From assembly GCA_964199315.1 (NCBI GenBank), contig OZ116707.1:5208001-5272000 (forward strand): a DNA stretch of 64,000 nucleotides. The letters are read 5' to 3'. Below are positions 7,291 to 7,926 of the stretch, piece after piece. The translations under genes were made by a program, and so were the position numbers. Numbering within the stretch: position 1 is the stretch's first letter; each line of letters opens with the position of its first letter. Source of the DNA: Orbicella franksi (Eukaryota). The notes under the pieces were generated by a model. The model was not told the DNA's origin. It searched no databases and saw only the letters and a list, made by a program, of their open reading frames with translations.

Positions 7291-7926
7291 ATGGTGGATC
7301 AATGTGAAGCCAACGAAGGCGAACTAATTATTTCAATAAAAGAGGCACTGAACCGAGAAAAATCAAAATTTGAGCGGCGAATTTCAAATGCATATAAGCT
7401 AAAGGATTTAGACAATACATTTCAAGAGCTAAATAAGCTAGCTGAAGCGGTTGTGAAAGGGAAGTTTGGCGGTCTTCGTGAGAGACCCAAATACAGCATC
7501 GGCAAGCTATATCCCATGCTACAACGAAGCATGATCCGCGCGAAAACCGCAATTTTTCGCCGTTTAAGTTCAAAGATGAGCAAGGTACATCCCTGGATGG
7601 TTTGCTTCGACCTTCCCATGCCACAGGAGGTCTTCAATCTCTTGCGTAAAGAGATTCTTGGTAGAACAAGATATGGGGTAGAAGTTGAAGAGAAACCAGG
7701 ATCAGTGGCTATAAAGTTTTCGAGCCTGAGAAGATTATGTAACCTGTTCAACCAATTCGAAGACTGTGGTGAATTCAGAAAGCAACTTGGTGAGGGAAAA
7801 GGAGAAGCAAAGCTCATTGTAAATGACGAGAAGAAGGGAACAATGATGTACATTGCTAAAGAGGAGCTTTTAAGAGCTAAATTTTATTATGGATATTGGA
7901 ATTCCTATGGCATCAGCCAGCATTGA
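7291..7926 (+). CDS. Uncharacterised 211-aa transposon accessory protein (HPW...YGxWN family)
   Basis: Intact ATG-to-stop ORF 84 bp inside the left TIR; homologous pieces at 16378-16824 and 38250-38882. No domain recognised. Confidence 0.8.
   Translation: MVDQCEANEGELIISIKEALNREKSKFERRISNAYKLKDLDNTFQELNKLAEAVVKGKFGGLRERPKYSIGKLYPMLQRSMIRAKTAIFRRLSSKMSKVHPWMVCFDLPMPQEVFNLLRKEILGRTRYGVEVEEKPGSVAIKFSSLRRLCNLFNQFEDCGEFRKQLGEGKGEAKLIVNDEKKGTMMYIAKEELLRAKFYYGYWNSYGISQH

Follow-up and report, generated by a model that had tools for sequence, protein, structure and literature searches.

The DUF8238 gene (PF26709) at positions 7291 to 7926 is probably the second gene of an anthozoan two-gene cut-and-paste transposon, in which it would encode an accessory subunit supplied by the element itself. 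The gene belongs to a multi-copy family that is part of a mobile unit and is retained and constrained like the transposase. Its members are homologous, are linked to a transposase of one family, have diverged together with it, and are under selection. We describe these properties for three gene copies in the window, that is, the whole stretch of 64,000 nucleotides of Orbicella franksi DNA that was analysed, and for loci fetched from outside it.

The DUF8238 family and its three copies in the window

A word-indexed search with the copy 1 protein returned 111 homologues at 51-96% identity (phmmer E-values from 2e-131 to 1e-13), most of which carry a precomputed full-length Pfam match to PF26709 (DUF8238). 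When 1.84 billion representatives were searched exhaustively with a profile, 238 clusters were found at E <=0.001. Every member stands alone, unfused, and none is longer than about 270 residues; the full-length ones have 205-242 residues. One member is publicly named, the Pocillopora damicornis hypothetical protein pdam_00017822 (RMX46471.1 / A0A3M6TYP0). The family had earlier been described as unknown, which holds for its function, as Pfam records none, but not for the family itself, which is already in Pfam. A Pfam scan of the copy 1 protein found no family because the scanned Pfam set was without the PF26709 model, and a scan of 10 diverged DUF8238 members found nothing. Full-text literature searches for 'PF26709' and 'DUF8238' returned no paper, so that, with no function recorded in Pfam, the family is catalogued but uncharacterised. 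We could find no paper on the pairing of DUF8238 with a transposase; new here are the transposon context of the family, the selection on it, and its structure model.

The 2,093 six-frame ORFs in the window were all searched with a family profile that we built from 34 members from outside the window. The profile picked out only copies 1, 2, and 3 (Table 1), and the next-best E-value was above 1. The earlier note had proposed that one family of about 210 residues occurs at these three places and had named a lack of significance in the alignment as a possible refutation; by the family profile against the six-frame ORFs, the matches are significant and all three copies are members. After the nearest relatives were dropped from the profile, copy 3 was still found at E 1e-9; for copy 2, the E-values were 3e-12 and 9e-08 (C-terminal pieces) and 0.003 (N-terminal piece). 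As a single sequence, copy 3 matched an outside protein (P0330) at E 2e-15. Comparisons within the window gave lower significance: BLASTP of copy 1 reached E 6e-06 and 2e-04 for the two downstream pieces of copy 2 and 0.36 for copy 3, and when copy 1 was used as a tblastn query on the complete window, copy 2 was recovered with E 7e-07 for its pieces combined and copy 3 was missed. Pairwise BLASTP among the window copies would thus be too weak by itself, and copy 3 would appear doubtful on that evidence. The best-conserved columns of the family are RRL, PW, E-x-F, and the C-terminal HYGxWN..G.PQH, and the shared motifs that the earlier note had singled out among the copies are these same columns.

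The ORFs and the alignment with an outside locus (L004) bear out the description of copy 1 as intact, copy 2 as disrupted, and copy 3 as truncated. Copy 2 and L004 are about 80% identical in DNA, and L004 encodes an intact protein of 220 residues (P0339). In the alignment of the two, copy 2 has a premature stop (CGA to TGA at 38612-38610), a frameshift from a 2-bp deletion near 38459, and also three in-frame deletions. The ORF of copy 3 begins with an ATG at 16824 and stops after 148 codons, and no C-terminal remainder is detectable downstream.

Table 1. Features of the window and of the outside loci used for comparison. Positions are those of the window unless a locus is given; profile positions refer to the DUF8238 family profile.
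Feature or locus	Position	Strand	Description
Left target-site duplication	7204-7206		AAG; from the empty-site joint
Left terminal inverted repeat	7207-7239	+	Starts CACGCCAGG; longest inverted repeat in the region
Copy 1, DUF8238 gene	7291-7926	+	Intact, uninterrupted ORF of 211 codons; starts ~85 bp inside one element end and runs inward; profile E 1e-78
Copy 1, profile match	7279-7923	+	Profile 2-212, E 1e-78
Transposase ORF	8457-10694	-	745 codons; convergent with copy 1
Right terminal inverted repeat	11541-11573	-	Minus strand reads CACGCTAGG; pairs with the left arm
Right target-site duplication	11574-11576		AAC, one mismatch to AAG; from the empty-site joint
Copy 3, truncated DUF8238 gene	16378-16824	-	Third sub-family; N-terminal 148 codons; profile E 3e-11
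Copy 3, profile match	16381-16959	-	Profile 34-119, E 3e-11
Transposase remnant, partner of copy 2	37238-37484	+	Last ~85 codons; convergent with copy 2
Copy 2, disrupted DUF8238 gene	38246-38885	-	Diverged sub-family; three collinear profile matches
Copy 2, profile match of piece a	38613-39128	-	Profile 1-84, E 3e-8
Copy 2, profile match of piece b	38406-38609	-	Profile 88-141, E 1.5e-12
Copy 2, profile match of piece c	38249-38515	-	Profile 126-206, E 2e-16
Copy 2, element terminus	38925-38962	-	Starts CACACCGGGAATTTT; resembles the L004 terminus
L001, L002/L003			Copy 1 sub-family; convergent transposase present
L004			P0339, copy 2 sub-family; convergent transposase present
L006			P0330, copy 3 sub-family; convergent transposase present
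L007-L012			P0383; convergent transposase present
L013			P0276; convergent transposase present
L014			P0232; convergent transposase present beyond an inserted LTR retrotransposon
L015			P0328; convergent transposase present, C-terminal half only
L016	L016:6143-6766		P0285; no transposase within 4.3 kb downstream

Limits of the element around copy 1

Copy 1 sits in an element of 4,367 bp (7207-11573) whose 33-nt inverted ends start with CAC, the two terminal arms being 85% complementary. RNA-library contigs include an empty site at which 7206 is joined to 11577; this skips 4,370 bases, corresponding to the 4,367-bp element plus 3. Loose contig ends that stem from other copies begin exactly at 7207, and loose ends with three different flanks start directly after 11573. 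The empty-site joint and the loose ends therefore give the exact limits of the element and a target duplication of 3 bp. The homology to the copy at L002, which is flanked by the target duplication AAT, also begins at 7207.

Among the outside loci, one unit (L007-L012) is more than 99% identical over about 5 kb and is found at five different insertion sites, with the target duplications TTT, CTA, AAT, and AGA and one imperfect pair, TTA/TAA. Its termini read CACGCTGGG...CCCAACGTG. Co-occurrence of the gene with CAC-type termini is seen at both the copy 1 element and this unit.

The inverted repeat is bipartite (7207-7239; L010:6814-6846), with a conserved CACGCYRGG, about 15 variable bases, and a conserved inner block that reads TTGGGCCA or TTTTGCCA. 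This arrangement recalls a heptamer-spacer-nonamer layout. The element interrupts a Ty3/gypsy-type pol gene, with reverse transcriptase and RNase H domains on both sides; the halves of this gene lie at 6318-7247 (-) and 11465-12502 (-), and uninterrupted paralogues of the split retrotransposon are present in RNA-library contigs.

Linkage of the DUF8238 gene to a transposase

The linkage between the DUF8238 gene and GDGAP-type transposases, which the earlier note had suspected, was scored by running the transposase profile over the fetched loci. Of 13 independent outside loci that had enough flanking DNA, 12 have a transposase of this family downstream of the DUF8238 gene, convergent and tail-to-tail with it; this pairing spans sub-families that are only about 19-30% identical. 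The second possible refutation named in the earlier note, that homologues would be mostly unlinked to these transposases, was not borne out. Within the window the linkage holds for copy 1, which has a full partner, and for copy 2, which has a remnant, but not for copy 3, beside which neither tblastn nor the transposase profile recognised a remnant in the window. The remnant next to copy 2 has the position and orientation that the pairing leads one to expect, and it matches positions 657-705 of the transposase profile at E 9e-6, and tblastn of the L004 transposase against it gives E 2e-22. The DNA homology between the copy 2 element and L004 ends at 37238. At its other side, copy 2 has kept its own terminus (CACACCGGG at 38962), which reads like the terminus upstream of the L004 gene (CACACGGGGGATTTT). 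The L004 transposase (L004:4094-6379, -) has four in-frame stops, and the L004 small gene is intact.

Two exceptions were found. The gene at L016 has no transposase within the available flank (Table 1), and members of the P0327 sub-family had no large ORF downstream on three contigs of assembly ERZ25878582, as judged without the DNA. These genes may be solo or non-autonomous copies, or may mark the beginning of domestication.

The partner transposase and the classification of the element

The conserved candidate catalytic residues of the transposase are D258 (GGDGAP), D339 (PxDMK), and E640 (GREAKH), and a C-terminal CxC...CxxC motif lies downstream of E640. We found more than 270 homologues, in Montipora, Acropora, Porites, Desmophyllum, Nematostella, Exaiptasia, Actinia, and Dendronephthya, and none of them carries a Pfam domain. 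No match to a Pfam transposase family or to RAG1 was obtained for 29 members at E <=1, and a profile of these 29 transposases, compared with all PDB sequences including RAG1 chains, gave a best E-value of 0.7, to survivin. At 10694-10692, the window copy has TTG in place of the initiator ATG of its close relatives (e.g. P0113), and no further in-frame ATG occurs before codon 75. This copy may not yield a full-length transposase, and the term intact carries that caveat here. No second full-length transposase turned up when the window was searched, only the remnant beside copy 2. Two further large ORFs, at 25578-27824 (-; 748 aa, without a Pfam match) and 58229-60280 (-; 683 aa, with a SWIM zinc finger), are unrelated to the 745-codon transposase and probably belong to other mobile elements.

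By its ends, the element appears EnSpm-like within the CMCT group (EnSpm, Mirage, Chapaev, Transib/RAG1), which falls short of proven membership. CAC...GTG termini with a 3-bp duplication are consistent with EnSpm (Kojima 2025, PMC12730594). The element has 5'-CAC...GTG-3' termini and a 3-bp duplication in common with EnSpm/CACTA and the wider CMCT group. An H-x4-H precedes the candidate catalytic E by 21 residues (H614-x4-H619 before E640) and is a candidate for the H(3-4)H motif of EnSpm/CACTA, but only the second histidine is invariant, position 614 being H, K, Y, or N among the relatives. The C(2)C motif that follows the second D in EnSpm/CACTA is absent from the coral transposase, in which the conserved segment after D339 reads GEL.NSA.YFSSFANV, and a further difference is that the coral transposase has no sequence match to Pfam transposase families. 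In maize En/Spm the second product is an alternative splice product from the same strand, whereas the second gene of the coral element is separate and convergent. The subterminal repeat arrays used by TnpA-type binders are also lacking at the ends of the coral element: among the terminal regions from four copies, no 8- or 9-mer occurred more than three times.

The element resembles ProtoRAG and other RAG-like elements in having two genes arranged tail-to-tail between inverted repeats that start with CAC. It differs in the target duplication, which is 5 bp in ProtoRAG and 3 bp in the coral element, and in the partner protein, as RAG2-like partners are Kelch beta-propellers and the coral partner is a protein of 211 residues with a predicted helical hairpin and alpha+beta domain. 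No sequence similarity between RAG1 and the coral transposase was detected. Membership of the element in the Transib/RAG1-like group was considered and rejected because its target duplication is 3 bp rather than 5 bp.

With PIF/Harbinger, the coral element shares the two-gene cut-and-paste organization, the 3-bp duplication, and a small accessory protein, the coral one being such by analogy. In Nuwa/Harbinger, the small accessory protein is needed in trans (PMC12730594). Unlike those of PIF/Harbinger, the coral proteins gave no Myb/SANT or DDE_Tnp_4 signal in Pfam scans, which for the small protein included 10 diverged members. The target duplications of PIF/Harbinger follow a TWA rule, to which TTT, CTA, AAT, and AGA in the coral unit are not restricted.

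Selection and co-divergence

Selection on the small gene had been proposed from the conservation of its diverged copies. We estimated dN/dS between copy 1 and L002, the pair to which this analysis was limited, more distant pairs being saturated at synonymous sites. For the small gene, dN was 0.113 and dS 0.704, which gives an omega of 0.16 (95% bootstrap 0.10-0.25), and two segments of the transposase gave 0.17 and 0.15. The intergenic DNA of the same two elements is only 69% identical. The proposal is supported by these values: the small gene is under purifying selection that appears, from this pair of sequences, to match in strength the selection on the transposase.

The identities of the small proteins and of the transposases are correlated across 28 pairs of eight loci (Pearson r = 0.91, a descriptive value, as the pairs are non-independent). 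The small protein evolves faster, with 19-28% identity where the transposase has 34-52%.

Predicted structure and charge of the DUF8238 protein

DUF8238 proteins are basic (pI 8.8-10.0), and their positive charge is concentrated in the C-terminal domain. The AlphaFold model of the full-length protein has a pLDDT of 64.6 and places three long helices over residues 9-92, with N-terminal residues 11-50 at about 90 pLDDT. The C-terminal part of 146 residues (66-211), modelled from 38 diverse sequences, reached a pLDDT of 92.3 and a pTM of 0.85; it consists of a long helix, then strand-helix-strand-strand-helix, and then four more strands. The predicted architecture of DUF8238 is a helical hairpin at the N terminus and, after it, a compact alpha+beta domain made up of about seven strands and two further helices.

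Foldseek found nothing significant for the full-length model (best E 0.024), and VIA-align returned only generic helical-hairpin matches for it. For the 66-211 model, Foldseek gave no convincing match in the PDB (best E 0.027) or among the BFVD viral structures (best E 0.005). VIA-align of this model against 48,161 representative chains gave a best Z of 4.3, with none at Z >=5, and its application to 999 Foldseek candidates gave a best Z of 4.4. In calibration, models without a clear match typically stood at Z 7-8, and therefore no known fold was recognised. The modelled C-terminal fold is accordingly one for which no relative was recognised, which falls short of proving a new fold. Searches of PDB sequences with the single small protein and with its profile gave nothing below E 0.3, and a profile-profile comparison between the small protein and its own transposase detected no relation. 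Structure, Pfam, and profile searches recognised no DNA-binding fold or motif in DUF8238, and no similarity to enzyme or chromatin-reader families was detected.

Proposed role and alternative explanations

In the explanation that we favour, the DUF8238 gene has stayed with its transposase throughout the divergence of the family, and we infer that its protein, acting in trans, serves the transposition machinery as an accessory subunit. It may help the transposase to find or pair the element ends, or to reach chromatin. Its most likely character would be that of a basic cofactor that binds nucleic acid or the transposase. Based on the basic domain and the helical hairpin, we tentatively suggest a dimerising factor that binds nucleic acid or the element ends, or has a bridging role. 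The Myb-like protein of Harbinger, TnpA of En/Spm, and RAG2 are functional parallels, and DUF8238 is a member of none of these families. It is conceivable, though we are doubtful, that DUF8238 has a new fold and is a second subunit without which a CMCT-type transposase (possibly with a RAG1 fold) would not work, doing a job like that of RAG2 for RAG1. In that case it would assist end recognition or synapsis, or couple cleavage to chromatin, and the transposases of the CMCT clade would have recruited unrelated partners several times independently.

The gene could also benefit the element outside the chemistry of transposition, by countering host silencing or by acting on host chromatin or transcription, for which the demethylation-promoting side of maize TnpA and the TET/JBP genes of fungal transposons are models. 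Such genes are carried by other DNA transposon lineages (PMC12730594). An independence from transposition would also agree with the intact small gene that adjoins a transposase with four in-frame stops at L004, and with the fact that no DNA-binding or transposase-like feature was recognised in DUF8238. We nevertheless regard this explanation as unlikely, as the protein resembles neither enzymes nor chromatin readers, and captured passengers are usually patchy in distribution whereas DUF8238 is present in every sub-family sampled and co-diverges with the transposase down to about 19% identity. Still less probable is a regulator or inhibitor of transposition by which the element would control its own copy number. 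A small convergent gene, on this explanation transcribed separately, would suit such control, convergent transcription itself could dampen transposase expression, and the data fit positive and negative action alike; the strength of purifying selection, equal to that on the transposase, and the presence of the gene in almost every copy would, by argument, fit an essential part better. Both of these roles, in host interaction or in inhibition, are less likely than end binding or bridging.

A host gene family, or chance ORFs, lying near transposons without any functional tie is very improbable and already largely refuted. L016 and the P0327 sub-family, in which no downstream transposase is recognisable, are what one would cite in its favour. 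Against it, the inverted repeats enclose the gene and carry it along to different sites, the gene exists in many copies of which some, such as copies 2 and 3, have decayed, and chance ORFs are ruled out by the profile E-values.

The accessory-subunit explanation is of interest because few cut-and-paste transposons have two genes. In each of the examples, Harbinger, En/Spm, and ProtoRAG, the transposase was shown to depend on a helper to recognise DNA, to enter the nucleus, or to couple to chromatin. Here a candidate helper domain, confidently modelled and unlike any solved structure in our searches, is tied to a transposase that its element ends place in the clade that produced RAG1. If DUF8238 is needed for transposition, a Pfam domain of this kind gains a function, and the element becomes a case of independent partner recruitment that is relevant to the origin of RAG1-RAG2, with a two-component system that is testable in cells. 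If it is dispensable, DUF8238 becomes a candidate counter-silencing factor in corals.

RNA-library contigs and the start of the small gene

Between 54 and 71% of the sampled words of the element are contained in fourteen RNA-library runs from six studies; a single raw-read run gave 0 reads. The contigs cover the whole element, including the intergenic DNA, at >=95% identity and without a splice joint. They break in the intergenic stretch at about 8180-8500 in all three runs that were aligned to the window. Two convergent transcripts could produce this pattern, and so, just as well, could DNA carry-over or breaks in the assembly.

The sequence AATCCAAGATGGCGGC is found at the start codon of the small gene in copy 1 (7282-7297), in copy 2 (38876-38891, -), and in L002, L004, L013, and L014, and is thus kept across sub-families whose proteins are only 19-30% identical. 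Around the ATG it resembles a YY1-type motif, and it could serve as the core promoter element of the small gene, only about 85 bp from the end of the element.
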